DNA from: Marsupella aquatica
Taxonomy: Eukaryota > Plantae > Marchantiophyta
Assembly (NCBI GenBank): GCA_973895155.1
Contig: OZ316899.1
Location: forward strand, 10,381,135 to 10,445,134
Direction of reading: 5' to 3'
DNA length: 64,000 nt
Both the position numbers and the translations under genes were made by a program. Positions 16,101-61,108 of the stretch are shown piece by piece. Each line of letters begins with the position of its first letter. Within the stretch, counting starts at the first letter, position 1. The notes below the pieces were generated by a model. It saw only the letters and a list, made by a program, of their open reading frames with translations. It did not search any database and had not been told where the DNA came from.

Positions 16101-17834
16101 GTTGTTGTTGCCGATGCCGATTTCTTTTCTTTCTCCAGTAGTTTCAGCAGACTCTGCATGCCTGGTTGCTGCATCGGCAAGTCTTCCTTCCTGGGCCTAA
16201 ACACCTGCTCGATCGTAGGACTAACAGGTGGTTGAGGCTTCTCAGCCAACGGCCTCGGCGTTGGAGCTTCCTCGGGTGCCCTTACCTGCAGGGGAAGTAC
16301 CGGGGCAAAAGTCTGACCTCTGGCATACCGGCACAACAGCGGCATGTGATAGCCAAGCCGCGACACGCTCCCCATGCCGATTACCTGCTGCTCCTCCTTT
16401 AAGATCTTCTTCAATTGGTTGAGGAGGTACCCGTTGTAGTCCCGGCTTGGGTCTGGCCTTTCTGCCAGATAGACCTGTGCCTTGCCGATCTCTGCCCTCG
16501 GCAAGTTACAATGCATGGTCACCCGCAAGAAGTCGATCATCTCTCCTATGTGCGGGTTGGTGCAGGTGTTCCGGAAGAAGCCATTCTTCGTTGATGGCCC
16601 GGGGAACGACCGGAACTCCTTGTCAGGCAAGGTCTTCCTGGTATCAACTTTGGTCTTATTGCCCATCGGCAAGCCAAACACTTCGGCAATCACCTTGGGA
16701 GTAAGATAGAAATCCTTCCCATATATCCTCGTGCAATTGGTCTCGGGTTCCCATGACCCCACGAATTCTAATAGGTCTGACTCCGGTACCTCCGGCTTCA
16801 GCCATGGTAATCTTACAAAGGCCTCCAAGCCGGATCCGGCCATGAAGCCTTGGTACTTCTTGGTCTGCATGGCCGTAAAGCATGCATCCTCCTCCCGTGC
16901 AAAATGTAGTTGCACCTCCACCGGTAGGGTTGCCGCCCAGCCCTTCCAGGTGTCATCCCTGGTTGGAATGGCCTTGATGGGATCGACCTCCTCCTCTTCG
17001 GCTTCTCCCTCTCTCCTGCTCTGTTGCTCGGCTGGCTTCTTTGGTGCCGTCGACCTCGTTCTTTTTGCCGGGGTGGCTTCATCGTTGACGGCTCCCTTCC
17101 TCTTCATCTCTGCTGCCGTGGAGGTTTCTCCTAGCACCGTTGCCTGGGTCCACCTTTCCGTGCTACCCTTTAATTCCCAGTGTATGTCGTTGCAGTTCTT
17201 GATGGCCTCTCGGATGCCGACGACGCTGTCCTTGCAAAACAGAAGATCGTCGAGTTGATTGGAAGTAGGTGTCCACAGGAACTCGTCCTTGATGAGTTCG
17301 CCTCCTAAGAAAGCCGTCTTCTGCAGCTCCCACAATCGAGCGAGCTCCTGCCGTTCTCGAGCTGCCCTTTCTGACTCCTCGTCCTCGTAAGTCTTGATGT
17401 ACTCAGTCGCCCGTTCGAACAGGCATCCCCAGAAATGTGCCGCTTGATTGACGTTGCTCATACCCTCCTTAGGTTGATCGTCGGTATCTACTCTCTCCCC
17501 GAGTGCTTGCCTAAGCAGCTGACAGTAGTTGGCCTCCCGTAGTCGTCTGCCTAGTTCGTGCTCGCAAATGAGCCACTATTTCCTGCAAGCGCTCCTTACC
17601 CCTCTCCTTTGCCGGTCCTTCTTCCCGTTGATCCTTCCTAGCCGCCGACGCTTAACGCGCCCTAACCCTAATCGGGTTTTCACCCTCAGCCTTACCTCCG
17701 GCCTCTGCCCGGGTTCCATGGTTGCCCCTAATTGTTTATATTTTCCTTGTTTTGTCACTATACTAAGGTGTTCCTAGGGTGCCTTCCTGCTTTACCCACT
17801 TAACTGGCCGAGTGATTCCTGTCTAGGCATCACA
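13172..17834 (-). repeat. 5' LTR of element B (4663 bp)
   Basis: Copy of 2285-6947; bounded by the TSD and PBS. Confidence 0.96.
14093..17461 (-). CDS. Intact 1122-aa accessory protein encoded inside the LTR (plant-mobile-domain/Transposase_32-like segment plus long coiled coil)
   Basis: Uninterrupted 3.4-kb ORF. Segment LLEFV...IYGKDFYLTPKVIAEVFGLP resembles plant gypsy extra-ORF domains; E/K/L-rich heptads in the C-terminal half. A homolog is present in element C. Confidence 0.85.
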   Translation of the reverse strand: MSNVNQAAHFWGCLFERATEYIKTYEDEESERAARERQELARLWELQKTAFLGGELIKDEFLWTPTSNQLDDLLFCKDSVVGIREAIKNCNDIHWELKGSTERWTQATVLGETSTAAEMKRKGAVNDEATPAKRTRSTAPKKPAEQQSRREGEAEEEEVDPIKAIPTRDDTWKGWAATLPVEVQLHFAREEDACFTAMQTKKYQGFMAGSGLEAFVRLPWLKPEVPESDLLEFVGSWEPETNCTRIYGKDFYLTPKVIAEVFGLPMGNKTKVDTRKTLPDKEFRSFPGPSTKNGFFRNTCTNPHIGEMIDFLRVTMHCNLPRAEIGKAQVYLAERPDPSRDYNGYLLNQLKKILKEEQQVIGMGSVSRLGYHMPLLCRYARGQTFAPVLPLQVRAPEEAPTPRPLAEKPQPPVSPTIEQVFRPRKEDLPMQQPGMQSLLKLLEKEKKSASATTTTTATATMPDTTTEVGLHRLTRENPFAGDERIRPESKPGVRMYVGTSSSESEAELPEAPTEEEEREKPEIQEVEEAVEDCSHDNSGYGSDHHVPGVRTCGRFVPTLPRVVRGDPNQQSSPESPPPDVAPPSFDGIKQTVQEFQERIKQEEEAALAKEKDLPGGDWPEDIRRLAEKGSKPLATIEEIRRTAWEQRPRWAMPITSTYSTYAKNRAMEYGEMCGELALGIFGEELEVGPFFHREQLEKHQLEEAVALERSKKDEVIRRLRRMEAEIEDLRAAKKAQDELRIKRHELNIMQGQLDAAQADNQNIKDKLTQTQEELADTIKEREKWKQELKNTEEAHITANSRAMAETQRKEWALKGELEKIRRALEQKEVELGKSYQGIMALQQELASLTASFKADLREKDEMLEQTYAKMNQMESVIIAELDKELRATQEEKATLKKELEEAHREQEEAKNELEGARKDLDETQEELEEITRKMENLQRRADNQTERLKKQAAVFKCLAAAGPSPVGTNQLPGVVIAEGQAAPPAPVPEVSGKGKGPAAEPPTKKKRKPSGSRSNTTSQAVVIKEVDPAPTPDRVTAKDPTTLGEGEAEAEGVAEAEAVRVAEAEAVGIAEAGVEAEAEGGPSQAEGELTRSRAGNLSVGGPTAVAAEEVLGASIEDPPPVS

Positions 17835-38390: not shown

Positions 38391-39255
38391 GGGACATATT
38401 TATATGCACTTGGGTCCAACCTAGACATTTGTTCATGTTATATTTGATTTGTTCATGTTTGGTGATATAAAAAAAAGTATTATCTATATTTATATTTGCC
38501 ATTCACTTTTGAATGAGTCATACTCATAACATATGTATTGTATTGTTTTATTGTGATCACTTGTGAATTTTACATGCAACTTTCTATCTAACCTCTGTTG
38601 CTCAATATAACTTTATTTCCTACTTATTCCATAATTTTCATTGTCACCCTTGTGTTTCCCTCCTCCGTGGTACGTCTATCCCTCCTCCTCCCTTCCTCTT
38701 TCTCCTCCCTCCTTCCTCTTCCATTGTACTCCCTCCCTTTTCCATCCTTCATTGTACCTCCCTCCATCCTCCCTCCTGCCCCATCCATATATTGGACCAT
38801 CCACCCTCTTCATTGTCTCACCTCACAATAATCTTAATTTTTAGTTTGCAAACAATTTGCAAAGCTCACAAAATCTCACAGGACTCGCAATTTCTATGAG
38901 GCTTCTCATTTCTCAATATTTCCATACTATACTATTCGCAAACTTGTGATGCAAAATCAATCACAAATTTCATATTCTCACCGTTTTGCAAATCTTCCAT
39001 CCTCCGACATTCTTAAACTTGTCAAACAACTACTATCGCAAAACATTTCAATCCAACCTTCTTTGCAAATATTTACATCAGTTAGTTTCGGAGTCGGCGA
39101 GCAATTTTGGCATCTTCAGAAGGCGCCTTTCCATTTGGCGCGTCTCGGTAAAACTTGCAAAATCACTTACTTTGCAATGTATTAGCGATATAATGCGCTT
39201 CAAGTACTATCTTTGCGATAGGGATAGAATTGCAAATTGCGATGCGGGTTGATTC

Positions 39256-39583
39256 TGTCACACCATTCTAGGTAGTGTTAGAGTGTATCATACTATCTAG
39301 ATCCGTATGTTTGGTATGTGTGCTATATGAGCCGATAAGGTTCCGTCAGGTTTGTGTGAGAGAGTACTTCTCACTTGTGAGGCACTGAAAGGTCATCTTT
39401 CAATGTTGAGCCTTGGAGAGAGAGGAGCTTGAGTGGCTATGGTGGCTGTGAGCTCCGCTTGTGTAACGTTGATTCCTTGAGTAGTGCAAGGTGCGTTGGC
39501 TTGACATACGTGTGTGATCGGATCGGTGCGGGATTGATGGGGTATTGTTGACCGGGATCGTTGTGCCGATTGTATTGAGATTA
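39256..39583 (+). repeat. Split direct repeat A1 of element D (328 bp)
   Basis: Matches 48441-48768 with about six substitutions by eye. Confidence 0.95.
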
Positions 39584-42500
39584 CATTGAAAGATCGCTCG
39601 AACTCTGCTGCTGTACGGACAGAGCTTCGATTGGAGGTTGTGTATTGGCGACGGTTTGTGGTAGTTCGAATCGATCGTGTTGTGTTGATTCGGATCTTAT
39701 TGTTGATATTGTGTTGGAAGATCTATTCTGCCAGGGAGCTATTGTTTAAGCTTTCGACAGTTCCCGAAGGGCTCTGAGATGTGTTGATCGAAGGGCTGAT
39801 TGACAGTAGAGGGATCTATGCCCGTGTTTGTAGATCTGTTGGACAGGGTCCGGACGGTGTAGTCGACCTTGATGCGATCTGTCCCGAGTTGCAATCTGTG
39901 ACAATAGCGATCGGATTTGATAAGGCCGGCTGTGGCACTACTGTTTTGATGAAGGAAACGGAGATCAAACTTTGAATGCTGCGTTTTGCGTCACTACTGT
40001 TTCCATTCGATCATGTGTATGTTGCCGTCGCCAAGCTGCGATTTTGCGTGAAGGGAACCGGCAGCCACAAAGTCAATGTTTTGTGAGGGAAATTGAGTCT
40101 GGATGTTGTGAGATTGAACTGCTATGTTTCCGTCGGACTGCTACTGCAATCTGATTCCGCGAAGGGAACCGAGAGGCAGAAGCTGGATGTTGCCGAATCC
40201 GAAACTCGATGGGCAGAACCTGAATGTTGCCGAATCCGAAATTAACTCGATCCGGCGTAGCGAAGCGTTGCGGGCATGAAGGGCTCACTCTTTGGCTCAT
40301 CTCGGCATTGCGGGCGTGAAGGGCTCATCTAGGCTTTGAGGCTTTGAGGCAACTCGTGGTTACTCGGGACGAGGGGCGTGAGGGCGGAGCAGGAGCGGGC
40401 CAACAAGCCAGCTTGCTGGTACGTGAGGAGTAGTTGCAAGTGCTGCCATTTTGGAGTGGCAGATTTGGTGCATAATGACAAGTGAGAGGTCACCCATCCC
40501 AAAGCTATTCCTCCTCTCATGCGCTTAACTAGCAAGTTTCTATGTGGTGCATTGTACATGCTTCCTTCCACATTTGATGTCCAAGGAATGAGGCCCTCGG
40601 GGTTTTATGCACTTTTGAATTCATCGAGATACTCTGTTTTAGCTAGTTTGCGATGGATTCTTGAATATTTGACGCGGGATTCTTGAGGCCTATTATGAAG
40701 GCCCTACATTGAACTATATACACATTATTTACATGTATTTCTGATTGATTGGTGTGGAGAGTTGTGGTAAATCCTCTTCTTGTTGTTGGATCCTCTCCAC
40801 ACATGCTTCCTGTTTATGCGCCATGTTAGTTTGGCGTGGGCGCTTGATTCTATAGGAGTGATCCGGGTTTGCAACCGGACATTCTAGTTGTGCTACGTAT
40901 TTCTCTCCTGGTGATGTTGGAGTGATGCCCAACACACCATGGTGAGTGCTTGTGTTGTTGACAGGGACAGATTGCCCTTAGGGTTAGCCTATAGATTAGG
41001 TTAGGTTGGTCACCACGGATTCTTCTGGCGCTGCTGGGTTACCCGATGGACGACGGACCGGTTTCACTCGGAATGGGGTGCAGTTTTGGCCAGCGACAGT
41101 GGTAGCAGTCAGCAGCACAGCTTCAGACAACGATTCTGACGAGGACTCTATGAGCAGTTCTCCTCGTCATCAGGTGATTGCACCTTTGTTGTGGGATATG
41201 GAAGAGATGTACGGGGCTACAAAGGGCCCACGACGATACTCTGGTGCAGTTGGCACGATTGATCTGGATGACTTCATCCAGGAGTTTGATACGTGGTGCA
41301 ATATGCAGACATTGCGTAACGCCACGTTGTTTACCCCTTTCATGGCATGGAAGGGATTATTTCAGCATTTGGAGGGGCCACCCATGGATGACTACCATGA
41401 GTTTTGGAAGGCTCATTTGGTTGAGATTGAGGCATGGAGGCAGCATTGGTCGCCTAATTACGTGTCCATCACCTATGGCACTAGTGCGGCTGCCCAACCC
41501 ATTGCCACAGCTGCTGCTGCTTCTTCTAGCAGCACTAGCCAGAGTGGCACACCATCCACCAGCAGCACTCCACCAGCATCCACCGCTACTCCTGCCGGTG
41601 TGATTGTGACAGGAACTGGAGTTGCGCCAGCATTTAACCCTGTGGTGGAATTCTTTGAGGTACTGAAGCAAAACTATCAGGGTGTGAGAACTGATAAGTT
41701 GAAGGGTCTTCAGGAGTTCCAACGCAAGACTGGAGAGAGCCTACGTGAGGCATACACACGTATGCGCAGATTGATCACTGTCACCAAGGGAGTGACAGAG
41801 GCTCAGGCAGTCTAGTTTTGGTATGCAATTCTGGACAGAGAATTGCGACGCAGAGTGAGAGATGTCACTCTGATTAGGGATGCAGATCCCACATTAGCAG
41901 TTGTTTTCACCCTTTCTGAGCGCATTGAGCTCAATATGGTGAATGAGAAGGTGGTGACTTCTGGATTTGCCAAGGAAGCACCAAAGGCTGCATCTACATC
42001 CACACCATAGCCTACTGCACGGAAGAGCCAGAGGGAGAAGCCTACTGCACGAGAGTCTACCAGCCAAAGACCTGTGCCCTCTTATGCTGGACAGCAGTGA
42101 GGATGTTGGACCTGTGGTGGGGATCATGCACAGAGATATTGTCCAGATCATAGAGGATCAGGGGGAGCATCAGCGCCTGATCAGCGACAGTGTGATCACT
42201 GTGGAGCTCCTGGACACACCAAGGATAGGTTTTTCTCACTCCACCCTGAGTTACGGAGAGGAGGATCCCGTACACATGATTAGGGAAGAGGAGGAGGAGG
42301 TAGAGGTGGTGGACGTGGTCGTGGCATGCCACATGCAGGGAGACAGGGAGGTGACGCTGCCCCTACTGTAACCATAGATCCAAAGGATGCTAAGATTGCT
42401 CAATTGGAGCAACAACTAGCTGCCATGGCTAGTTCCCAGGTGAGACCTAATTCTGGTGATGGGGCATCTACATCCTATGGACCTTCCACATCCCATGATC

Positions 42501-43864
42501 CTTCCACATCTTATGGAGCTGATGGAGACCTTGCCACCATGGGATTCATGTGTGGCACTGCACATATTGATGCATCAGCAGCTTTGACACGTGGGGCAGC
42601 CAAAGCTCTTGAGCCCCGAGGAGCAGTAGTGGAGCTAGATCCACAGAGGGGGGATGCACGTCGGCAGACAAAGCTTCCTCAGTCTTTTACATTGTCAGAG
42701 ACAGTTCAGACTGCCTCTATAAACCCGGTTCGGACAAACCCTGGCGTGGGTAAGTTGGCAGAATCAGGTAGTGATGCAGCAGGGATGACAGGTACCCTGC
42801 TGGGGGCGGCTACTACCATGGTACGCACCCCATTATTTTCAGCGACAGACATTCTGAACTTGGGAGTTGGTCCTGCAGAAGTGTTCAGATTGGCAGCTAC
42901 ACTCTGTGAGGACACTCCACTGGTTGCTTCCCATGCAGAAGCAACTTGCAGTGTTGATGTAGTGAAGACCATGCCACCTACTGCTACTAGTGAGACATGG
43001 CATGCAGCAACAGCGAGGTTGGTGGATTTACCAGCACGCCCTGCATTTGAGAGGACTAGGTTTAAACCTAGTGTTGTGTCATTGGATAATCGGAGTGGTA
43101 TCTTCTGATTAGGTGGGCCTTCTGGAGCAGTATACCAGCCAGAGAGAGTGTTACTGGATACTGGTGCTCAACCCTTGATGTTGGGGAAGTCTGCCATACG
43201 TGGATTGGGATTGCGTCCAGAGGATTTGGAGGATTGTCCCTTTCCCATTTAGACTTCATTGGGGGGACCTACACCTACACAGCATATCACCAGGAGACCA
43301 CTTGATTTGAGGATTCAGGAAGGTCATACCACATATAGCTCACAGATACAGGCGCGAGCTATTCTGACTAAGGCAGAGTCATATGATGTGTTGGTGGGAT
43401 GTACAGTGCTCTACCCCATGGGATTTATTCTTGATTTTTGGGAGGAATCAGTGTCATATAGACCTGATTGGCAGTCAGGAGATGCTCGATTGAGAAAATT
43501 GCCAGTGAGATTTAGTGGACCTGTGGGAGGCCCTAAATCCACACCATTGTCTTTGGCAGCATTCAGTGGTGTAATTGCTGGACCTGATGATTTGATTGAG
43601 GGTAATGCGCATGCAGCCGATGTTCCACCATTGGAGGAGTCTCATGAGGAGCACATCATGCGAGGATTACCTGTTGGCAGTGTTGTGCCACCAATGTGGG
43701 GCACTGCACAGGCCTTGCCACAGGCAGCAGCACGATTGGTACATGATGCACGGCGTCATGCTTTTACACCACAGTCAGGAGCAGAGCAGTCTCTTGCAGA
43801 TGGACCTGTGACTCTTTCACCATTGGATACCACTCCTATTGCTTGGCAATATCCACCGAAGGGT

Positions 43865-44806
43865 ATTTGTTTGTTGGATCTTTTTGGTGGGATTAGCACT
43901 GGATTGGCTGTTGTTCTTCAGGCAGGAATTCCTGTGCGTTGTTATTTGTATGTGGAGACAGATGAGACAACACGGAGGGTCTCATTGCGACATGTGGCTA
44001 TGTTGGTGGATAGATATCCACAGTTGCTGCCAGTGGATGCTGTTCGTGGTTATCAGCATGCACTACCTGCTGATATTTCATTGTTGGGGGCGGATCATCT
44101 ACATCGTGTTGGCCCCATTGATTTGGTGATTGCTGGTTGGCCATGTCAGGGCCAATCTAGAGCTGGCATTGGGCATGGACTTCATGATCCACGCTCTGCA
44201 TTGTTTTGGGAGATGTTACGGGTGCTGCATCATCTCCAGCTACATCAGACACAGTCTCCAGCATACATTTTGGAGAATGTGTCATTGTTAGGTGATGATC
44301 GTAGTCGGATTGTTGCCAGTGTTCACCAGGTGAGGTCTTGGATTGGACCTGCTGTGTTATTGGATGCTGCACGTGTGGGTTCTCGTGCACGTCGTCCACG
44401 CTTGTGGTGGACTAATTTGATCCCATGTGAGGTGCTGAAGCGCGCATTTGACAGCATTCCACGCTCACCAGCCTTAGTGGTGGATGATATTTTGGATCCA
44501 GGGCGTCGTGCACAGGGTGTGACCCAACCTGATAGACCTCCATTGGCAATGGTCAATGCAGTTGGGCGCCCACGTTGTGCATTACCCACTCTTGTAAGCC
44601 ACTCTACTTCATATGCATTCAGAGCAGGTGGCCCTGGACTTGTGTGGGACATAGCTCTCCAGCAGTTAGTGGAGCCTACTGCTGATGAGAGAGAGCGTGC
44701 TATGGGATTTTTGACTGGCACCACTGCAGTTGCCTCTGTGTTAGAGGGTTTGTGGCGCCAGGTTCTTGGTCAAGCAATGGACTTGAATTGTTTGACTTGG
44801 ATTATC
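43865..44806 (+). CDS. C5 DNA cytosine methyltransferase domain (DNMT3-like) within the polyprotein
   Basis: Motif I LLDLFGGISTG, II YVETD, IV DLVIAGWPCQGQSRAG, VI YILENV, VIII RARRPRLWWTN, IX ERERAMGF, X RQVLGQAM; no stop inside the domain. Confidence 0.93.
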
Positions 44807-47800
44807 AGCTTGGGAGTAGCTGAATAGTTGCGGATGCGCTCTGCTGGAATTACTGATTGTCCCTTGGTGAGCTTGCGGTCCACTGAGACAGTATTGACCA
44901 CAACTGGGGGCGAGCAGACAGTCAATGGACCTATGGCAGGATTGGCCAAGGCTGGACAGATTGTTGAGCAGGAAGGGACTGCTCAATCTACTGCTAAATA
45001 GCAATCATCGGCTATCTCTTCTACCCTACAAAGAGATATTAGGGATTTGGTGGAGAGTTGGGAACCACAGCTTGGCCCTAAGTTAACAGGGGAGGAGAGA
45101 CGTCGCATGCATCGATTCCTGAAGAGTTATTGGAATTGTTTTGCATTCAGCATGAAGAATTTGGGGACATTGAAGGGCCCTGGTATTCAGATTGAATTGG
45201 CTAGTGATGCGCCAATCTTTCGTAGACCATACCGCTATAGTGACATGGAGAGAGCTCTGATTCAAAGCATAACTCAAGATTTGTTGGAGGCTGGATTGGT
45301 GGAGATTTCATATGGGGAGTATGCATCTGCCACAGTGATGCCAGCCAAGAAGGATGTGCATGGCAATTACACAGATAGGCGCATGTGTGGTGATTACAGA
45401 CCTATTAATCGCCAGACAAAATCTGATCGATATGCCATGCCCACACCTGAGGAGATCTTTGATGCTGTGGGGCATGCAAAGGTTTTGAGTTCATTGGATC
45501 TGAGGGCAGGATACCATCAGCTTCCAATTAGGCATGCTGACAGGTCCAAGACAGCATTCTGGGGGATTGATTCTTATGGCAAAGATCGTTTGTATCAATG
45601 GTTATTCTTACCATTTGGGTTGAAGAATGCACCAGTTGAGTTCCAGAGAGTCATGGATCGAATCCTTGCAGGTTTGGATTTTGTCAGATCTTATATTGAT
45701 GATATTTTGGTCTATTCTTCTACTGTGGAAGAACATCAGCAGCACTTGCAGATTGTGTTGGAGAGATTGAGAGCACATGGGTTGAAGCTCCATCCTGGCA
45801 AGTGTAAGTTCTTCCAAGACCAGATTGAGTATTTGGGCCACACTATATACCCAGGGGGATTGGGTGTACAGCAGACTAAAGTGGAGGCCATTACACAGAT
45901 TCCTCATCCTACTGATGTGAGCAGAGTTCGTGCATTCTTGGGATTGGCGAGCTACTATAGGAGGTATGTTAAAGGATTTAGCCAGCTTGCTAAACCTTTA
46001 ACAATACTCACTAAGTTGGATCAGAAATGGACTTGGGGTGATGACCAAGAGCATGCCTTTCAGGAGTTGAAGCAAAGGTTGGCATCATCCCCTATTTTGA
46101 GAAGACCCATTTCAGGCAGACCATTTCAGCTACACACTGATTGGAGTGGAGTAGGACTTGGAGCAGTGCTGACTCAGAAGGATGATGAGGGGAATGAGTT
46201 TGTTGTGGCTTATGCCAGTAGATCAAACAATGCAGCAGAGGCTAAGTATAGCTCTTATGAGGGAGAGTGTTTGGCAGCAGTGTGGGCTGTTGCACACTTT
46301 CGTTGCTACTTGTTTGATAACCCCTTTACCTTGATCACTGATCATCAGCCTCTTAAGTGGTTAATGGAGTCTGACAAGCTTACAGGGAAGCTTGCACGAT
46401 GGGCATTGTTGTTACAGGAGTATGATTTCCAGGTGGTGCATAGGCCTGGAAAAGTGAACTTGGATGCAGATGGATTAAGCCGCAATCCATGTACCAGTCA
46501 GCAAGATGAGACTGGATCTAGATGGCATGATGAGTCAGATAAGGAGATGGTGCCAGGATGGCATGCATCTGCCTTTCTTTGTTGGGTGCCAACATACAGT
46601 GGATTTGTGGACTCTACCTCATTGGATGGAGTGGATGATGAGTCTTCAGATGTGGATGTTGGTGAGGTAACTTCTGGACAACAAGATATTCACAATGATG
46701 TGAGAGTGTTGGAATATCTGCGCAGTGGTTCTATTGTTGACAGTGTTGATGCCAAGGAACGTGACAGGGTTCTACAGAGAGCCAAGAGATTTCGATGGGA
46801 GGGAAACCATCTTTTGAGAGTACTGCATGATGGTAGGATGTTGGTGGTACCAAAACCATCACAACGAGTACATTTGGTGTGACATGCGCACGAGGAGTTG
46901 GGTCACTTTGGTGTGAAGCGCACTTACAGCTTGCTGCAGACACAGTATTGGTGGCGTGGTATGCACACTCATGTCCAACAGTTGATAGCTAAGTGTGTGG
47001 TATGTGATAGAGTGAGAGCATCATTTAATGCTCCCACTCCCCAGTTGCACCCGTTGCCGATCATGGGTTTGGGATATCGTTGGAGTTTGGATTTTGCTGG
47101 TCCATTACCTCTTACCCAACGTCATAATCAGTATGTTTTGGTCATGGTGGAGCACTTCTCCAAGTGGATTGAGCTAGTGGTGTTGCCAGATAAAGCCAGT
47201 GGAGGAGTTGCTGCTACATTTTTGGATCGTGTACTCAGTCATTTTGGAGCACCAGCTGAGGTGTTGACTGATCAGGGAACTGAGTTCCGTGGAGAGTTTG
47301 AGAGTTTGTGTGAACAAGCTCTGATTGATCATCGTACTACCTCTCGTGATCATCCTGAGGCAGATGGATTAGCTGAGAGAGTTGTGCAAACTGTGAAGAG
47401 AGGATTGCGTAAGTATGGCTTGCAGGTTGGTCATCTGGGAGATTGGGATCTCCAGCTACCTTGGTTAGCTATGGGCTACCGTTTCAGTCGGCAAGCATCA
47501 CTTGCATCCTTCTCACCTTACTTTTTGCTCTATGGTAGAGAGCCAGATTTGCCAACAGCTATTCGTCGTGATGCTGCATCAGTTGTGAACTTAGATGATC
47601 CTGATGTTTGGGTCAAGGTGTGTTCAGAGAGAGCACGGGTATTTCAGCGAGTGATGCCCATGGCTTTTGACAACCTTGCCATTGCCCAACATCGTGATAC
47701 TTTGAGGTATGCCACTATTCGTGGAGGAGGTTACCGTGCAAGCATTCGACGATTTCATCCTGGTGATTATGTTTATTTGCAGCAGACAGCACCCACCACA

Positions 47801-47986
47801 CTTGATGTGACCGCAGGCCGGACAATCTTATGTGTGCGTGAAGTGTTGCCTTCTGGTGTCCTGATGTTGGAGGGACGCGATGGTATGGTTTGGAAGGATC
47901 ATGTGCGCAACTGTGCACCATGTCACCTTCCCAACATTGATGGTACAGTAGATCCAAGCTTGGCACATGTTCATGCTGGCTTGAAA

Positions 47987-48127
47987 TGTATGTTGTGTGG
48001 ATCTGCTCAGGGAGCAGCTACTATGTTGATTTGTGATCAGTGTTCTAGAGGATGGCACATGTCATGTTTGACACCACCATTGCAGGTGATTCCTAGTGGA
48101 TCATGGTTGTGTCCTCAGTGTCGGTGA
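47987..48127 (+). CDS. PHD finger at the integrase C-terminus
   Basis: C4HC3 pattern CMLC...LICDQCSRGWHMSCLTPPL...WLCPQC. Confidence 0.93.
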   Translation, partial: CMLCGSAQGAATMLICDQCSRGWHMSCLTPPLQVIPSGSWLCPQCR

Positions 48128-48300
48128 AGCCGACTAGTTATCATTTGTGTTCTCTTGGCAGATATGGATTGCAGGTAGGTGATCGATGGGGCTCACTTGC
48201 ACCCGGCCTCCTGATCTTCACACCTAAAAAGGTGTATATCAACCTTGTAGAACTCATGGCTAGCTAGAGTTAAGGGACCTTACTCCCAGCTAGGGGGGCG

Positions 48301-48905
48301 ATTGTGGGTTTTGGACATGTGTGGACATGAGTTCCACTTGTATTCCATTCTCTTGTGTTTGTGATGTGGCAGTGTGACTATGTCTGGATGTATGTGACAA
48401 GCGATGTATGTTGTGTAGCGATGTGTATGCGCACGACAGCTGTCACACCATTCTAGGTAGTGTTAGAGTGTATCGTACTATCTAGATCCGTATGTTTGGT
48501 ATGTGTGCTATATGAGCCGATAAGGTTCCGTCAGGTTTGTGTGAGAGGGTACTTCTCACTTGTGAGGCATTGAAAGGTCATCTTTCAATGTTGAGCCTTG
48601 GAGAGAGAGGAGCTTGAGTGGCTATGGTGGCTGTGAGCTCCGCTTGTGTAACGTGGATTCCTTGAGTAGTGCAAGGTGCGTTGGCTTGACATACGTGTGT
48701 GATCGGATCGGTGCAGGATCGATGGGGTATTGTTGACCGGGATCGTTGTGCCGATTGTATTGAGATTATTGTGGGTTTTGGACATGTGTGGACATGAGTT
48801 CCACTTGTATTCCATTCTCTTGTGTTTGTGATGTGGCAGTGTGACTATGTCTGGATGTATGTGACAAGCGATGTATGTTGTGTAGCGATGTGTATGCGCA
48901 CGACA
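48301..48905 (+). repeat. 3' repeat block B1-GC-A2-B2 of element D
   Basis: B (138 bp) occurs twice, identical by eye, flanking A2; PPT-like TAGGGGGGCG at 48291-48300. Confidence 0.95.
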
Positions 48906-48993
48906 ATTCGCAAATTATGCCAAGCATCGCCCATCGGAAATACAAGAGCGTCAACAAAAATATCTTTGCAAAAGTGTTAAATATGTTGTAGTG

Positions 48994-49875: not shown

Positions 49876-52800
49876 GTGTAGATGCAACCTTTGGTGCTCC
49901 TTGGCAAATCCAGAAGTCACAACTTTCTCATTCACCATATTGAGCACAATTATGCGCTCAAAAAGTGTAAAAACAATTGCCAATGTGGGATCTGCATCCC
50001 TAAGACAGTAGAGTGACACCTCTTACTCAGCGTCACAATTCTCTGTCCAAAATTTTATACCAAAATTGGATTGCCTGGGCCTTTGTCACTCCCTTGGTGA
50101 CAATGATCAATCTTCACACATGGGTGTATGCCTCACGTAGACTCTCTTCAGTCACGTTGAAAATCTGGGAAACCCTTCAACTGATTAGTCCACACACCTT
50201 GATAGTTTTGCTTCAATACTTCAAAGAACTCCACCACAAGATTAAATGTTGGCGCAACTCTCGGCCCTACCATAATTGCATCGGTAGGAGTAGCGTTGGA
50301 TGCTAGTGGAGTGCTACTAGTGGATGGTGTGCCACTCTAATTAGTGCTGCTAGAAGAAGCAGCAGTTGTGGCAATGGGTTGGGCAACTGCAATAGTGCCA
50401 TAGATGATGGACACATAATTAGGCGACCAATGTTGTCTTCATGCCTCAATCTCAACCAATTAAGATTTTCAAAACTCATGGTAGTCATCCATGAATGGCC
50501 CCTCCAAATGCTGAAACAATCCCTTCCATGCCATGAAAGATGTGAACAATGTGGCATTATGCAATGTCTGCATATTGCACCACGTATCAAACTCCTGGAT
50601 AAAATTATCCAAATCAATTGTGCCAACTGCACCAGAGTATCTTCTTGGGCCTTTTGTAGCCCCATACATCTCTTCCATGTCCTACAACAAAGGTGCAATC
50701 ACTCAGGGGGTTGACTATAAAAAATTTAGAAACCATGTGCAATCCAAAATAGGTATTTTTCATAGAAATTAGCTAAATTTTTAAAAAGCATAGAAAGCAA
50801 AAGAAGGTATTAGAAACCCATATTTGTAGAATATTCTCTAATATATACATTTTAAAAAGTAAAATAGGTCATTAATATCGAAACTAGAGAATATTTTTAG
50901 AATATTCCCGTTATAAAATAGGTGTGTTTATATTAGGCTAGGATCGCACGTGGTACACCAAAATATACACGAAGTTAATCCCCCGAGTGCAATCACTCAA
51001 TGACAAGGAGAACTAGTTACAGAGTCCTCGTCAAAATCACTGTTTGAAGCTATGTTGTTGATTGCTACCAATGTTGTTGGCCAAAATTGCACCCCACTTT
51101 GAGTGAAACCGGTCCGTCATCCATTGGGTAGCCCCGCAGTACCAAAAGAATCTGTGATGACCAATCACAAAATTATAGCCATCAATCTAATCGATGTGCT
51201 AACCCTAATTGGGCAATTTGTCCTTGCTAGCACCACAAGCACTCACCATGGTGTGTTGGGCATCACTCCAACATCACCATGAGAGAAATATATAGCACAT
51301 CTAGAGTGTCTGGTTGCAAACCCAAATCAATCCTATGGAATCAAGCGCCCACACAAAACTAACATGGCCCATAGACAAGAAGCATGTGTGGAGAGAATCC
51401 AACAACAAGAATGGATAAACAACAACTCTCCACACCAAGAGTGATCACAAATCGATCAAACAATGTTCATAATGTTCAATGTAGGACCTTCATAATAGGC
51501 CTCACGGATCCAATGTCAATTATCCAAGAATCCACCGCAAATGAGTTCAAATTGAGTATTTAAATGGATTTAGAAGTGCATAAAACCCCGAGGGCCTCAT
51601 TTCTTGGACACCAAGCGTGGAAGGAAACATGTACAATATATGCACCACATAAGAACTAGCTACTTCAGTGCATGAGCAAAATAATAGCTTTGGGATAGGT
51701 GACCTCTCACTTGTCATTATGTACCAAATCTGACACACAAAACTGTCAACACTTGCAAATTCTCCTCATGTACCTAGCAAGTTGGCTTGTTGGCCCGCTC
51801 GACCCTGCTCCACCCTCACGCCCCTCATCCCAAATTGCCTCAAAGCCTTGAAACGCCTAGATGAGCCAAAGAGCAACGCTTTGCTACGCCAGGTTTGGCA
51901 ACATTGGCCCTCGTTTCCTTCACGGAAATTGCAAATTGGCGTTCGACAACATTCAAACTTTGGGTTTGGCAGTAGTATCACGATTCGGCAACTTTGGCCC
52001 TTGTTTCCTTCACAAAAATTGCAGATCGGCTTTGGCCCCTTCACAAAACTTTGGGTGTGGCAGCAGCAACCAATTAAGCAACTTTGACCCTCATTTCCTT
52101 CATGGAAATGACAGTACGGCAACACGCAGCCAATTCCTTGTCAAAACAACAACATTCCGGTTTTGTTTCCTTCAAAAAATAGTTGCTGCTTCACCTATGC
52201 CTGACCAATGCCTCCCCGCAATCATGGCAGTAGTCGGCCATTGGATCTAAAGTCTCATAGATCAACTTCCATTGTCCGCCATCTATTCAATGATTTGTAA
52301 ACATTTGTGAAGTGCTTTTCTTCCTGAAAAAACAACATTCAAAGTCAGCTACTCATTCAACAACAACATCATGTGCCCATGATCACCGACATCTTCATAG
52401 CACATCAAGTACCAGCAATTCCAACCAATCAACAATGCAAGCTACTATGAACCCCAACAAAACAATCACCCGACACCAACAAGCAATTTGAGCTACCATG
52501 AATCGTTGAAAACTCAATCGATTGAACTTAATTATGTCGGTACAGTCCGCACGACATAATTCTTTCCCCTCACTTCTTTGAGGTAATCTCAATAGAATCA
52601 AACCATGATCAATGCCAATCAAACATCTGATCCCGTCCAAAATGATCACATACAGATATTGAGCCAAGCGCACCTCACACTTCAAGGAATCCTTGTTACG
52701 TACGCACGAAACTGGCCAGCCACACCATAGCCGCCAAAGCTCATGCTCAAAGGCTCAACATCAAAGAAGTGAGGCCTTTGAGCGACAACAAAGGGATAAC

Positions 52801-52908
52801 TATCCCTAAAAATGTGAACTAAACCCTATCGGCTCATATAGCACACATACAAAACATATAAACCTAGAAAACATGATATACTCTAATGCTACCTAGAATG
52901 GTGTGACA
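49876..52908 (-). mobile_element. D2: older, decayed 5' part of a second D-family element
   Basis: Reverse complement starts TGTCACACCATTCTAGGTAG like 39256; contains a diverged 5' UTR and gag (MEEMYGATKGPRRYSGAVGTIDLD). Confidence 0.92.
50702..50987. mobile_element. MITE with 8-bp TSD (hAT-like)
   Basis: TIRs CTCAGGGGGTTGACT...AGTTAATCCCCCGAG; TSD TGCAATCA; absent from the homologous position in D. Confidence 0.85.
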
Positions 52909-55081: not shown

Positions 55082-55599
55082 TATTCAGAGACAAGAAGAT
55101 GAATAAGAACATACACCAACAACTGGAGGTTCCCTCCAACTTCCATTACCTTATAGTCCCTAAGGACTCGATCTATTACATGCGGTTAGGTTGTTACTAA
55201 CAACCTAAGCTTCGGTTAGTTAGGACTAACTAACTCTACTAACATGACTCGGGTTAGTGTTAACTTCATATTACAACACTCCCCCTTGGTTACTTGAATA
55301 GCATAATAAAGTAACCATATTGAGAGTAATACTAACCCTAGGTGGATTATTTTGGTACCCATAAGGAGAGTGTGGTCTCATCAAAACCCCCCTTCTTTCT
55401 TCTGGGGGAAAGAGTACCACCACTCTGTACATGGCATGGGTCCATATTGAAATGTAGACGTATAGTAGAAATGTGATTCGATGTATGCATTCTTGATAGG
55501 CGAAGGTGAACATGTTAATGCATCGTAAGTGGTAATGGTTGCGGTGTCGTCTATAATCGTGTAGAAAATGGAGTTTAGGGTTTAATCGGATCGTAATGG

Positions 55600-58500
55600 T
55601 CATATCTGCTCTGTGTGCAGTGTGGATAGGCTTCTCATGCCGATGCCGTATGAATGTTCCTTATGCAAAAGCGGTGGTAATGGTTTTGTGAATAAGTCTG
55701 CTCGGTTGTCTCGGCTGGGTATCCATTCGACCTGAATTTGATCACCGTGCTGTTCATGTGTATAGAAGAATTTCGGAGAGATGTGTTTAATTCTGTCACC
55801 TTTTATGAAGCCATGAGCGATTTGGTCAACACAGGGGCGGTTGTCCTCGTAAATAGTAGTAGGCGCTTTAGATTGTTGGCGACCAGTGTGCTTGTGGATG
55901 TGATGGAGCATGCTTCGTAACCATACACATTCTCGGCAGGCTTCATACAAAGCTATGATTTCCGCATGATTAGAAGAGGTTGTGGTGAGTGTTTGCTTGG
56001 AGCTGCGCCACGAAATGGCGGTGCCACCTTGAAGAAAAACGTACCCTGTTTGTGATTTGGCATCTCCAGGGTCAGAGAGGTAGCCCGCATCTGCAAATCC
56101 AATCAATTTGTCTTCAGCATCTTTCGGAAAAAATAGACCAACGTCGACTGTGCCCTTCAGGTATCGAAAAATCCTCTTCAGCCCATTCCAATGGCGGATT
56201 GTTGGCTGAGAACTATGTCTGGCCAAGAGATTTACAGCAAAAGAGATGTCGGGACGAGTCTGATTAGCCAAATACATAAGGGCGCCAATGGCAGAGAGGT
56301 AGGGTTTGTCGGATCCAAGAAGAGGTTCTGTTTCGCCGCGCCTTCTGAACATATCTTTGTTAGTGTCTAAGGAGCGAAGCTCCATTGGTGTGCTGACAGG
56401 GTGGGCTGTTTGCATATTGAACTGTCGTAAAATCTTCTCGGTGTAGGTAGATTGACTAATCAGAATACCATTGTGCAGGTAGTCGAACTGAATGCCGAGG
56501 CAGAAGTTAGGTGGACCAAGGTCCCTCATTTCGAATGTGCCCTTCAGAATACGGAGTGTATGGGCTGTGAGTTGTGGTGTCCCGAATATATTCAGGTCAT
56601 CAACATAGATGGCTATTATGACGAATTCTTCTGCCTCAGATTTCAGGAATAGACAGGGCGCTAGCTCATCATTTATAAATCCCAAAGCTAACATTTCAGC
56701 TTGGAATCGTTTATACCACATCCGGCCACTTTGCTTTAGGCCATACATTGAACGCAAGATTTGTACGGCATATTCCATTTGAGGTCTCTTGCTGCGTGCT
56801 GGAGGCACTTGATGTGTATTATGTGGTGAGTATAGCCCACCAGAGTGGACAGTAGGTCCAGCATTTGTAATTTGCGCAATTAAGGGTTCAGTAGGAACCA
56901 TCTGGATCATGCCAGATCGTAGTGATTGGACTGATATGCCGGATTTCTCCCCCTGAATGTGGAAGGACAATCTATTGAGAAGCTCTGGAGGAGCTTTCAT
57001 GTAAATTTTGGTATCTAGCATGCCATACAGGTAAGCTGTTATTACATCCAGGATGTGCATGACTAGCTTATGTAGTAAAGCAAACGCTATCATGTAGCGG
57101 TATGTAATTGAGTCCATCACTGGAGAATGTGTCAGGTCATAGTCTTGACCTGGGATTTGGGTGTAGCCCTTCGCCACTAGTCTGGCCTTATATCTAACTA
57201 CTTCGCCCTTGGCATTTCTCTTGCGGACGAAGATGAATCTGTAGCCTGTTAGATGGCTGTGAGTAGGAGCTGAAGTGATCGGTCCGAAAACTTGGCGTTT
57301 GATCAGCGAATCAAGTTCAGAGTTAATAGCCGCTTCCCATTGGGGCCAGTCTGGGCGAGATTGACATTCTGTTACTGTTAATGGGTCTGGAGTATCATTA
57401 GTTATCTCTTTTGATATCATATATGCAAATGCATCATCTATGGTAGTGGTTTCTCGTTTCCAGATTTGGCCTGAATGCATATATTGGATGGCTATTTCGT
57501 CATTGTCATTAACTAAAGTTGGTTGAGGTCCAGGGGGTGCAGGTGTGGGACTTGGTATCGTAGGTACAATAGGTGTGGTCCGGCATTGTCTGGGTTGGCT
57601 ATCTTTCGAGCCGAGTGGTCTGCCCCTTTTTGCCCTGGGGAGGGCTTCGGTAGCTAGTCGAGTGGGTTGGATCCGTGCTGGTGCATTGGCAGCGGGTGTT
57701 AAGGATTGAGTGACATTTGCAGCATCATTAAAGGCGTCTGGGAGTTTCTCTAACATTTGTTGAAGGTGGAGGATTTTCTGTACTTCTGCTTCGGTTTGGA
57801 CTGTCCGTGGATCATGCTGGAAGGAGGGTTTTAACTGCCATTGTAAGTCCGGTGTATAGACTGGAGTCTGGTTCTCCATTAATTTGGGGAAATCATCTTC
57901 AATAAAATCACAATCAAGGAACCGAGCCTTGAATAGATCTGCTGTAGATGGTTCTAAATACCGAATAATTGATGGTGAGTCGAATCCTACATAAATCCCC
58001 TGTTGTCTCTGTGGACCCATCTTGGTGCGTTTGGGTCCCAAAATGGGGACCAGGACTTTGCACCCGAAGATGCGAAGGTGAGAGACATTAGGTGGGATTC
58101 CGAACAATAAATGGTGTGGGGTATACTGATTATAGGCAGATGGTCTGTATCGGATGAGGGAGGAGGCGTGAATAATGGCATGACCCCATGCTGATATAGG
58201 TAAATTGGTCTGTAGCAGTAAAGGTCTGGCTATCATCTGTAGTCGCTTGATTAAGGATTCAGCTATTCCATTCTGGAAGTGTACATGGGGTACAGGATAC
58301 TGAACATCAATCCCTGCAGTTTCGCAGTATGTGTCGAATGTCCGGGATGTGAACTCACCGGCATTATCGACTCGAAGGGTGCAGATTGGATGATCTGGAA
58401 ATTGTGATCTGAGTTTCAGTATGTTGGACAGTATCCGAGAAAATACAAGATTTCTGGTTGATAGCAAGGAGACTTGGGACCATTTGGAGGAAGCATCGAT

Positions 58501-60237
58501 GAGTACTAGGAAGTATCTGAAGGGGCCTGATGGGGGGTCTATAGGGCCACACACATCCGCATGTAGGCGTTCAAGGAATCGGGGTATAGCGTGTATGGTT
58601 TTGTCAATGGAGGGGCGTATGATAAGTTTACCCTGGGAACATGCTGTGCAGATCTGTTTACTTTGGGACGGGTGGACGCCAAGTGGGATGCCTACTGTGT
58701 CCTGAATGATTCTGTGGTACATGGTAGTACCTGGATGACCAAGGCGAAGATGCCATCGGTCCGTAAGTGTTCTGGTTGCCTTTTCTGTGTGATATGAATA
58801 TATGTGAGTGATATAGAGGCCAGGGGGATGGTTTAACAGGGTCTCTTTGATTATAAGTCCTGTATTGGTTTCGGCCAAAATGTGCAGTACTTCCTGCCGA
58901 TCTTGTTTGCTGGTATGAATGTGTAGGTTGTTGTCCCGTATATCACGAAAACTTATCAAGTTTCGGGTGGCTGTAGGGGCGTATATGGCTGATCGAATAC
59001 GGATGGTTGTTCCGCCAGGAAATCGGACGATTGCTGGGCCATTGCCCTCTTCAATGTGATTCTGTCCAGTGATGGTTGTGACAGGACGGTTAGATTGAAG
59101 GATCTTAGTGAAGTATTTCTTGTGGCGTAGTATCGAATGAGATGTTCCGCTGTCCACAATACAATGTGTGGGAGCAGGATCGGCAGGGAGGTCGCTTTGT
59201 AAACTAACTGTATGAACCTCAGGTAAAGGTGAAGAGACTACGTAATGGTCAAGGTCATTGGGTGCCTCTAGGAAATTGCCGTGACGTCCGGGGCCTGGTT
59301 GATGCAAATTATCTTGATATAGCTTAACTAAGTGGGCAGGGGCTCGACAAACGTTTTGTGTGTGACCTTTAGTTCCACATCTAAAACAGGTGGGAGTGTC
59401 AGACTTATCTCTGTTATAGGTGAGGTAGTCTCGTCCTCTGCCGCGGACGAAGCTGCGGCCTCCTCCTCTGTTGCCTCTCCGGTTCCAGGTTCGTCCCGGT
59501 GGTGTTTGCCAATCGTTGCTCCTGCCCATGCCCCGGTCGAAACGGCCTCGTCCTCTTCCTGTCGAACGTCCTCTGCTGCGACTGAAACTTCTGCCTCTGC
59601 CTCTGGTGCTGCCTTCTCCTCTGTTGAAGTGGGTCTCGGTCTTGGTTGGTGGTGCAGCACTGCCGGGTGGTCGAGTTTTGGCGTTTTCAAGGAGCAAAAT
59701 CTGGTGCTTTTCTGCTAATAGCATGTAAGCGATTAGTTCAGAATATTTGGTAAAGTTCATATTACGGTATTGTGCTGAGAGTACCAGGTTTGTAGCATGA
59801 AATGTCGATAACGTCTTCTCGATTTGTTCTTCGTCGGATACAGGGTGATCGCACACTGCTAGCTGTGAAGTGATACGAAATAACTCGCTGTTATAATTGG
59901 CAATTGTAGCATGGTCTTGAACTCGTAAGTTGATCCAATCATGGCGTGCTGCAGGGAGTGATATAGTTTTCATGTGATCAAATCGAGATTGTAGGTCCTC
60001 CCAGAGTAAGCGTGGGTTGTATTGATTCAAGTACTGTCGCTTCAATGGGGCTGCTAAGTGGTGACGGATGAGGATGAGGGCCTTTGCCTTCTCTTGAAGA
60101 GTGCATCCAGCGTCTGTGGTGATCGTGTCTTGGAGAGATTTGGAGCTGAGATGTGCTTCAATATCCAGGGACCACGATAAGTAATTGGCCCCATCGATTG
60201 ACAGTGCCTCAAATAAGAGTTTCTCTACGGTAGTCAT
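55600..60237 (-). CDS. copia gag-PR-IN-RT-RNase H polyprotein (1545 aa)
   Basis: LSIDGANYLSW gag start, CFRCGTKGH, IVDSGTSH, WHLRLGHP, RVDNAGEF, YKARLVAKG, IYVDDL, ADAGY, ADLFTK. Confidence 0.97.
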   Translation of the reverse strand: MTTVEKLLFEALSIDGANYLSWSLDIEAHLSSKSLQDTITTDAGCTLQEKAKALILIRHHLAAPLKRQYLNQYNPRLLWEDLQSRFDHMKTISLPAARHDWINLRVQDHATIANYNSELFRITSQLAVCDHPVSDEEQIEKTLSTFHATNLVLSAQYRNMNFTKYSELIAYMLLAEKHQILLLENAKTRPPGSAAPPTKTETHFNRGEGSTRGRGRSFSRSRGRSTGRGRGRFDRGMGRSNDWQTPPGRTWNRRGNRGGGRSFVRGRGRDYLTYNRDKSDTPTCFRCGTKGHTQNVCRAPAHLVKLYQDNLHQPGPGRHGNFLEAPNDLDHYVVSSPLPEVHTVSLQSDLPADPAPTHCIVDSGTSHSILRHKKYFTKILQSNRPVTTITGQNHIEEGNGPAIVRFPGGTTIRIRSAIYAPTATRNLISFRDIRDNNLHIHTSKQDRQEVLHILAETNTGLIIKETLLNHPPGLYITHIYSYHTEKATRTLTDRWHLRLGHPGTTMYHRIIQDTVGIPLGVHPSQSKQICTACSQGKLIIRPSIDKTIHAIPRFLERLHADVCGPIDPPSGPFRYFLVLIDASSKWSQVSLLSTRNLVFSRILSNILKLRSQFPDHPICTLRVDNAGEFTSRTFDTYCETAGIDVQYPVPHVHFQNGIAESLIKRLQMIARPLLLQTNLPISAWGHAIIHASSLIRYRPSAYNQYTPHHLLFGIPPNVSHLRIFGCKVLVPILGPKRTKMGPQRQQGIYVGFDSPSIIRYLEPSTADLFKARFLDCDFIEDDFPKLMENQTPVYTPDLQWQLKPSFQHDPRTVQTEAEVQKILHLQQMLEKLPDAFNDAANVTQSLTPAANAPARIQPTRLATEALPRAKRGRPLGSKDSQPRQCRTTPIVPTIPSPTPAPPGPQPTLVNDNDEIAIQYMHSGQIWKRETTTIDDAFAYMISKEITNDTPDPLTVTECQSRPDWPQWEAAINSELDSLIKRQVFGPITSAPTHSHLTGYRFIFVRKRNAKGEVVRYKARLVAKGYTQIPGQDYDLTHSPVMDSITYRYMIAFALLHKLVMHILDVITAYLYGMLDTKIYMKAPPELLNRLSFHIQGEKSGISVQSLRSGMIQMVPTEPLIAQITNAGPTVHSGGLYSPHNTHQVPPARSKRPQMEYAVQILRSMYGLKQSGRMWYKRFQAEMLALGFINDELAPCLFLKSEAEEFVIIAIYVDDLNIFGTPQLTAHTLRILKGTFEMRDLGPPNFCLGIQFDYLHNGILISQSTYTEKILRQFNMQTAHPVSTPMELRSLDTNKDMFRRRGETEPLLGSDKPYLSAIGALMYLANQTRPDISFAVNLLARHSSQPTIRHWNGLKRIFRYLKGTVDVGLFFPKDAEDKLIGFADAGYLSDPGDAKSQTGYVFLQGGTAISWRSSKQTLTTTSSNHAEIIALYEACRECVWLRSMLHHIHKHTGRQQSKAPTTIYEDNRPCVDQIAHGFIKGDRIKHISPKFFYTHEQHGDQIQVEWIPSRDNRADLFTKPLPPLLHKEHSYGIGMRSLSTLHTEQI

Positions 60238-60557
60238 TGCCTCTATCCAGGGTAGTCTATGAATGTGAACTGTTGGAAAATCAATGTCGAATGTTCAGAA
60301 TGCTATAAATGTCAGATTTAGTGACCTTGAGCATTTTCGTGTGGAGTTCGTGGATGGATGACTGTGGCGCTCTTCCTTCGTAAAAGTGAATGTGGGCGAT
60401 TTGATGGAATGCAAAGTCTCGCTGTAGGAATAATCGTTGATCAATTGGGCGTCGCTTCACAAAGTTCGGAAGAAAAAAAAATTGCGAAGATGAGAGAGGA
60501 TGAGTCGTGGGTAGTGCGTCAGTGAAAAAAAAAAATTCTGTGCTCAGCTTTGGCAGC

Positions 60558-60571
60558 TCGTGCTGATAACG
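60558..60571 (-). promoter_or_regulatory. Half-tRNA-type PBS of element E (tRNA-Ile anticodon arm)
   Basis: Minus strand CGTTATCAGCACGA abuts the 5' LTR; no TGG-type PBS present. Confidence 0.7.
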
Positions 60572-61108
60572 TATTCAGAGACAAGAAGATGAATAAGAAC
60601 ATACACCAACAACTGGAGGTTCCCTCCAACTTCCATTACCTTATAGTCCCTAAGGACTCGATCTATTACATGCGGTTAGGTTGTTACTAACAACCTAAGC
60701 TTCGGTTAGTTAGGACTAACTAACTCTACTAACATGACTCGGGTTAGTGTTAACTTCATATTACAACACATTTGGCTTAAAAAGTGTACATTTAAGTGCA
60801 TTTGGTCTAGAAAGTGTAGCTTTGAGTGCAACAAAGTGTACATTTGGCCTAAAAAGTGTACCAACTCTTATTATAATCATTTAAAAGAAAGGAATGAATA
60901 GAAAAATATTTTTAATTATGCAAAAAAAGCAAACATTCATATTCATAACGATCAAAAGTTTAGAAAATGAGGAGATAGTATAACTAACACTCAATGGCAT
61001 GGTCTCACATTAAAACTATTAAAATAGTAAATAACTAGTAGGTACTTGTTACTATCTAAGTAACTATCTATTTAATAATTATTATAGCTTCGCAAGTAAC
61101 AACTAAGT

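Follow-up and report, generated by a model that had tools for sequence, protein, structure and literature searches.

Where does a Ty3/gypsy retrotransposon start its DNA strands when no TGG-type primer-binding site follows its 5' repeat? The question is raised by element D, which occupies positions 39256–48905 on the plus strand of a 64,000-nucleotide stretch of the genome of the liverwort Marsupella aquatica (contig OZ316899.1; this whole stretch is hereafter the window, numbered from its first letter). The element consists, in this order, of a repeat A1, a leader, open reading frames (ORFs), a polypurine tract, a repeat B1, the dinucleotide GC, and the repeats A2 and B2. This copy is referred to as D1; a second copy, D2, is truncated on its 3' side and breaks off after about 2.9 kb. 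An initial annotation of the sequence had proposed that D is primed without a transfer RNA (tRNA) by a segment of its own repeat, possibly through a hairpin switch, and had named covariation over many copies as a check. Our analysis of the window and of related copies indicates that element D likely uses Tf1-type self-priming with a piece of its own RNA instead of a host tRNA.

Complementarity and covariation of the putative primer and site

Comparison of A1 with the leader confirmed that positions 39583–39594 (ACATTGAAAGAT, plus strand) are the exact reverse complement of positions 39395–39406 (ATCTTTCAATGT, plus strand) within A1, as initially annotated. The downstream segment is the putative primer-binding site and begins with AC at the very first base past A1, with no TGG-type site in this place; the upstream segment is the putative self-primer, hereafter P. 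In D2, repeat A lies at 52585–52908 on the minus strand, as located by alignment and nhmmer, with a putative self-primer at 52758–52774 (CCTCACTTCTTTGATGT) and a putative primer-binding site at 52568–52584 (ACCTCAAAGAAGTGAGG) on the same strand. Positions 52568–52581 and 52761–52774 are exact reverse complements over 14 nt, and 16 of 17 positions match over the full segments. The D2 pair differs from the D1 pair yet still matches, just as the annotation had described.

To assess chance, the bases directly following A were compared with the whole of A for their longest exact complement, whose length was set against 5000 dinucleotide-preserving shuffles per copy. The longest complement was 12 nt in D1 and 14 nt in D2, and it was reached by 0 of 5000 shuffles in either copy (maxima of 9 and 11). 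Chance complementarity could appeal only to the short length of the D1 match (12 nt); it has next to no probability given these counts and is refuted by the comparative data, in which relatives show in-register, compensated pairing.

The genomic copies used for comparison came from Calypogeia (L001 and L087, the two A copies of the latter, from the Calypogeia fissa family, being 99.4% identical), Marchantia (L085) and Klebsormidium nitens (L084 and L088), and a gag profile search added 80 metagenome loci. A repeat-A profile run with nhmmer returned 42 copies in which a binding site comes next and 12 in which repeat B does. Closterium L086 and Marchantia L003 and L092, the last with runs of N, have no usable 5' repeat and were left out.

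In all lineages, including about 40 Sphagnum-associated metagenome contigs, a stretch of A that ends just before a conserved (T/C)GAGCC is complementary, in one common register, to the bases directly following A. The primer and site read AGTTCTCTAAGT and ACTTAGAGAACT in Calypogeia (L001, L087), TAGTTCTTCGAGT and ACTCGAAGAACTA in Marchantia (L085), and AGTTCTTTGAGT and ACTCAAAGAACT in the Sphagnum group, where the match is often extended to 17–20 nt. Together with D1 and D2 these make five diverged versions from four bryophyte sources, with complements of 12–17 nt. When the 12 core positions are counted over the five versions, 59 of 60 cells pair, and at least two pair types occur at 9 of the 12 positions. 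The covariation check over many copies shows that the pairing is kept in the relatives, and the same register together with compensatory changes at these nine positions supports self-priming as initially proposed.

Within the Sphagnum group, 29 distinct copies retain at least 10 of the 12 positions of AGTTCTTTGAGT and ACTCAAAGAACT. At position 14, 16 copies have A-T and 6 have G-C (permutation, 102 of 5000). This covariation suggests a Sphagnum-group duplex, and with it a primer, of more than 12 nt. Position 2 was also considered as a covarying position and rejected, for its G/A and C/T variants are not associated and look like transitions that followed insertion.

The same comparison bears on the possibility that a host tRNA, a tRNA half or another small host RNA is the primer and the match within the element is secondary. 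ARAGORN detected no tRNA gene in either the window or the 83 fetched loci, so the tRNA test rests on the absent TGG and on the lineage-specific covariation. None of the five site versions starts with TGG, all starting with AC or AT, and as judged from their sequences none would pair with a tRNA 3' end. Moreover, 9 of 12 positions vary among the versions, while land-plant tRNAs hardly vary in sequence, and two different versions (D1 and D2) coexist in one genome. Priming by a host RNA is highly improbable on these grounds, although half-tRNA priming exists in plant copia lineages (PMC6317226) and the scan was confined to the window and the 83 loci.

Transcription start and folding of the leader RNA

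Analysis of the sequences upstream of P indicated where transcripts may begin. A TATA box (GGGGTATAAAG or GGGGTATAC) precedes the first base of the 12-nt P by 29–31 nt in the Sphagnum, Calypogeia and Marchantia copies, which is the usual spacing between TATA box and start in plants, and in D1 and Calypogeia the duplex starts at a pyrimidine-purine step. Three transcript-like contigs were considered for locating the start. L090 and L091 belong to more distant families and were set aside. L089 starts within A, about 75 nt ahead of its binding site ACATAGAAAGG, and the primer is not visible in it. This ENA contig (positions 1–90) comes from the closest relative of D, with a gag 72% identical to that of the window, and its site differs from the D1 site ACATTGAAAGAT, which predicts a further version of the primer.

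Every lineage carries, directly upstream of P, a near copy of its own binding site, the left arm L, which forms a hairpin with P. In D1, the fold places L at 39381–39391 on the plus strand. The L-P hairpin is strongest in Marchantia (-16.9 kcal/mol, z -6.1), followed by Calypogeia (-13.7 kcal/mol, z -3.9), Sphagnum L009 (-13.0 kcal/mol, z -5.6) and A2 of the window (-11.1 kcal/mol, z -4.1), and it is weak in A1 (-7.2 kcal/mol) and in D2. The alternative hairpin reported earlier, CATTGAAAG-GTCAT-CTTTCAATG, lies at 48568–48590 in A2, and its A1 version carries one mismatch. The three-way match among L, P and the site needs selection, because L is never templated from P or from the site in reverse transcription.

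Of the proposed hairpin switch, the hairpin itself is real and conserved in relatives, but the TATA spacing of the relatives suggests that transcripts begin downstream of L. An RNA that begins at P would carry L in its 3' copy of A but not at its 5' end. L may therefore act on the 3' repeat copy rather than as a 5' switch: with a start at P, it could keep the 3' copy of P off the binding site, and in transcripts from an upstream start it would block priming, which would amount to control by the choice of start site. Such control would recall what has been described for Tf2 (PMC5341516).

The presence of P in both A copies, and the fact that the strong L-P hairpin ends exactly at the predicted primer 3' end, leave room for other sources of the primer, namely the P copy in A2, the P of a second packaged RNA acting in trans, or the L-P hairpin extended as a fold-back. 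We consider these very unlikely: the TATA spacing sets P at the transcript 5' end in three lineages, extension of the L-P hairpin leaves the end of A at the downstream site unexplained, and cutting A2 would detach the 3' R that is needed for strand transfer.

To examine the folding between P and the site, twelve copies drawn from the five versions were aligned from P through the binding site, and a consensus structure with pair counts was obtained with RNAalifold. The MAFFT alignment sets the binding sites of D1 and D2 two columns off register, and the tool counts for the first helix are too low for this reason; the count of 59 of 60 given above is anchored. The consensus consists of six helices between primer and site. 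Its cells are paired in 93% of cases, compared with 34–49% when the partners are slid by 1–3 columns, and 16 pairs have changed on both sides, compared with 7.5 ± 1.9 in shuffles (0 of 500).

Helix 1 pairs bases 1–9 of P with the binding site. Helix 2 pairs the last three bases of P and the following UGAGCC with GGCUUGAC(U/A), about 115 nt downstream; 99% of its cells are paired, with one compensatory pair. In D1, its 5' strand lies at 39404–39412 and its 3' strand (GGCTTGACA), among the most conserved stretches in repeat A, at 39498–39506, both on the plus strand; the helix appears in RNAalifold as positions 12–20 with 132–140 and also in the single-sequence fold. Since helix 2 includes the end of P, the predicted cleavage point (after ...GU; in D1 on the plus strand after 39406, ahead of the conserved TGAGCC in A1) falls within a stretch of RNA-RNA pairing, and the 3' end of P can pair in either of two places. 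The third base from this end shows covariation with the binding site as well as with the end of helix 2. Single-sequence folds of both window copies likewise close the 5' end on the site after A (D1, -81 kcal/mol, z -1.8; D2, -94.7 kcal/mol, z -5.6). A small hairpin, CTCTG...CAGAG, is predicted by the single-sequence fold directly 3' of the D1 binding site (39603–39624, plus strand), and D2 has a counterpart with a different stem (TTATGTCG/CGACATAA) at 52530–52560 on the minus strand, which hints at a further conserved structural element.

Repeat boundaries, predicted strand starts and integration

Three boundaries coincide in the window, Calypogeia, Sphagnum and Marchantia copies: A ends just before the site, B begins just after the polypurine tract, and the A2|B2 junction joins both of these points. 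In D1, A1 (TGTCAC...GAGATT, 327 nt) spans 39256–39582 on the plus strand; it shows 98% identity with 48441–48767, matches the family profile in nhmmer and carries a putative promoter, the putative primer and a putative R-U5-like part. The polypurine tract CTAGGGGGGCG (48290–48300, plus strand) is kept in the window, Calypogeia, Sphagnum, Marchantia and K. nitens copies, and B begins at the next base in all of them. Repeat B1 (48301–48438, plus strand, 138 nt) ends with ...CGCACGACA, is followed by GC at 48439–48440 and is 100% identical to 48768–48905. Repeat A2 (48441–48767, plus strand), 98% identical to A1, contains a copy of L at 48566–48576 and a copy of the primer at 48580–48591, and repeat B2 (48768–48905, plus strand), the same as B1, forms the right end of the element (...ACGACA).

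The sequences that flank the A2|B2 junction differ between lineages. Because A ends exactly at the site, the 3' end of the primer must anneal to just those lineage-specific bases that match P, and this requirement is the strongest argument against a host primer. As far as the boundaries tell, both DNA strands appear to begin where expected.

These observations can be assembled into the following model. Transcription would begin at P or a few bases upstream of it, and the 5' end of the RNA would fold back, with bases 1–9 of P on the binding site, while UGAGCC and the end of P just before it form helix 2 with GGCUUGAC(U/A). The RNase H of the element would then cut after ...GU, within helix 2. 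The freed 3' end would re-pair with the first bases of the site, complete the 12-bp duplex and be extended through U5 and R, after which synthesis would transfer to the A copy at the 3' end. Plus-strand synthesis would set out from the first base of B, just past the polypurine tract. L would most likely keep P sequestered in any transcribed stretch that includes L (the 3' copy of A, or transcripts from an upstream start), so that only the 5'-terminal P would prime.

The P/site duplex might instead be only a structural or regulatory helix of the leader, with a role in packaging, dimerisation or translation control, while another RNA annealing nearby is the primer. Such helices are common in retroelement leaders, the duplex is one helix of a larger conserved structure, and the priming step proposed here is itself deduced from sequence. 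However, in every lineage the duplexed site starts right where A ends, so the primer must pair with lineage-variable bases, and only the element's own P changes along with the site. In addition, no TGG or other conserved site resembling a host RNA adjoins A. A purely structural duplex is unlikely in view of these points.

Several observations weigh against self-priming by D. Its start of transcription and its cleavage are, like the priming, read from sequence features. The window copies have no TATA box at -30, and their sole TATA-like motif, CTATATGAG, stands 71 nt upstream of P; a start from this motif would place L inside the RNA. Position 3 of the D2 duplex is mismatched, and many old Sphagnum copies carry uncompensated transitions, such as A.C at position 2 in 8 of 29, which are expected in dead copies after insertion and add no support. 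Part of the covariation would arise automatically under self-priming, because the plus-strand site is copied from the primer; this counts against taking the covariation as proof of independent selection, while it supports the mechanism. The scope of the tRNA scan, stated above, belongs here as well. Finally, the fit between priming at this site and the integrated A...B-A-B layout remains a difficulty.

As for this layout, the binding site and the polypurine tract would together define a canonical long terminal repeat (LTR) of the form B-GC-A. Integrated copies start with TGTCA, where A begins, and finish with ...ACGACA, where B ends, and both termini map to the palindrome GACAGCTGTC within the B-GC-A LTR. 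D1 is flanked by a target-site duplication ATTC (39252–39255 and 48906–48909), and 4-bp duplications are found at about ten insertions, those of relatives among them, including ATTC, AGGT, AATC, CATA, AAGG, TGTT, TTCA, TACA and ACTA. The B|A junction is a perfect palindrome, GACA GC TGTC, in the window (48430–48450) and in L001 (15545–15565), with TGACAGCTGTCA in K. nitens L084 (13650–13672); it looks like an internal att site in the B-GC-A LTR, with both element ends at its halves.

The A...B-A-B form was found in seven independent Sphagnum-group copies, the window and Calypogeia L087, and a longer A...B-A-B-A-B form in Calypogeia L001 (15454–16429). An A...B-only form has an intact target duplication in four cases and a 3/4 match in one more. 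The single-B copies that lack A2-B2 are L023, L037, L047, L049 and L050 of the Sphagnum group, with the intact duplications TGTT, TTCA, TACA and ACTA; such A...B forms could equally be B1/B2 recombinants. None of 38 copies shows A-B-A followed by the binding site, and none has a B upstream of the A that precedes the site.

The integrated A...B-A-B layout can be described as a circular permutation of the B-GC-A LTR, and we tentatively raise the possibility, which we regard as doubtful, that integration proceeds from junction-containing DNA (circular or with tandem LTRs), with the DDE integrase cutting the internal att site. The A2|B2 junction joins the minus-strand start exactly to the plus-strand start, the signature of an LTR-LTR junction; if an intermediate of this kind were cut at the internal att site, the layout would follow. 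A two-LTR circle cut at random was considered as well and leaves the strict polarity unexplained. Under integration from such a junction, the self-primer and L would help to make the permuted cycle polar. If true, this would be a gypsy element really using the circle-junction route, which was once proposed, and later rejected, for retroviruses.

Relatives and known self-priming systems

The ORFs of D1 encode a C-5 DNA methylase domain, reverse transcriptase (RT), RNase H, integrase (IN) and a C-terminal PHD finger. The methylase domain (PF00145, DNA_methylase) lies in the polyprotein ORF 43259–44827, upstream of RT-RNase H-IN. The PHD finger stands at the C-terminus of the integrase (window 46898–48127), and relatives with both domains are widespread in liverworts and in Sphagnum-associated metagenomes. 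Since its ORFs are broken into several frames, the D1 copy is probably dead. The window also contains a Ty1/copia element (55082–60769, minus strand) that looks intact: its 198-bp LTRs are identical and its polyprotein has 1545 aa. The site next to the 5' LTR (GTTATCAGCACGAGC) bears only a loose resemblance to the tRNA-iMet site and may be of the half-tRNA type.

The closest relatives of the DNA methyltransferase (DNMT), RT and gag-like ORFs are found in Calypogeia fissa, Marchantia polymorpha, Riccia, Sphagnum and many moss-associated metagenome contigs, and more distant ones in Klebsormidium nitens, Closterium, Chara and Volvox. No fungal name occurs among the best 120 RT matches, in which the nearest named organisms are liverworts, Klebsormidium, Closterium, Chara and Volvox. 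For the Sphagnum troendelagicum element L002, the first repeat search was misled by an unrelated 700-bp repeat, and its true A1 is 6369–6797. Three copies of this unrelated repeat of about 700 bp lie in and around the element (7934–8710, 13938–14589 in inverted orientation, and 16910–17661), and one of them sits directly after B1-GC, replacing A2.

Comparison with Tf1 and Tf2 of Schizosaccharomyces pombe revealed the same arrangement of a site directly after the 5' repeat and a complement of about 11–12 nt at the predicted start of R, with no tRNA site. Further RNA helices between primer and site are also shared with Tf1, for which Lin and Levin reportedly described a U5-IR stem in this position. 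To our knowledge, the L-P hairpin, with its copy of the site directly upstream of the primer, has no counterpart known from Tf1. Unlike Tf1/Tf2, the D family has a PHD finger and not a chromodomain, a DNMT domain in pol, a 4-bp duplication and an A...B-A-B arrangement in place of plain LTRs. The self-priming of Tf1/Tf2 itself is established (summarised in PMC5341516).

Predictions of self-priming in plants have been limited to the Tcn1 clade, to which it was described as unique among chromoviruses, and the TAR lineage of copia elements, in a survey that included neither liverworts nor Klebsormidium (PMC6317226). In the Tcn1 clade of mosses and club-mosses, self-priming is predicted in 83% of elements, and the 5-bp target duplication and the chromodomain are each present in 100%; the authors take self-priming as a mark of relatedness to Tf1/sushi and possibly of horizontal transfer (PMC6317226). 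The D family shares with Tcn1 its non-seed-plant hosts, its Ty3/gypsy nature and the predicted self-priming, but differs in its 4-bp duplication, PHD finger, DNMT domain and split repeats, and it lacks the chromodomain and the 5-bp duplication. In the TAR lineage of plant Ty1/copia elements, self-priming is predicted in 89% (PMC6317226); TAR resembles D in its tRNA-independent, self-complementary site and differs in its copia domain order and ordinary LTRs.

The D family is clearly related to KnitGypsy-Dnmt3 of Klebsormidium nitens, which has a gypsy pol with an embedded Dnmt3-like domain and an A-coding-B-A-B layout whose DIRS-like repeats were noted in a paper that is silent on priming (PMC5890265). 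D shares with it both the Dnmt domain inside the gypsy polyprotein and the A-coding-B-A-B layout. Our own K. nitens comparison rests on the 3' end of L084 (DF237340.1, 13520–14356; RT identity 41%), where a polypurine tract, B (133 nt), GC, A (562 nt), B and the palindrome GTGACAGCTGTCA follow one another. This copy has no 5' repeat, and no complement of its A2 was found in its leader; L088 begins within the leader. DIRS, Ngaro and PAT elements show the same A1...B1-A2-B2 repeat order as D, yet they have a tyrosine recombinase and no target duplication, whereas a DDE integrase, TG...CA ends and 4-bp duplications characterise the D family, in which B and A are exactly bounded by the polypurine tract and the site.

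As far as the sequences can tell, what is new here would most likely be self-priming in a gypsy family with DNMT and PHD domains and A...B-A-B repeats, the mechanism itself being known from Tf1 and some moss elements; the features of note are the hairpin that mimics the binding site and the helix across the predicted cleavage site. The D family, structurally far from Tcn1, occurs in liverworts and mosses and has relatives in Klebsormidium. Self-priming in green plants would then be either older and more widespread than had been assumed, or of multiple origin. Locating the strand starts in a family whose DIRS-like repeats lacked an explanation leads to a concrete, testable model of its replication.

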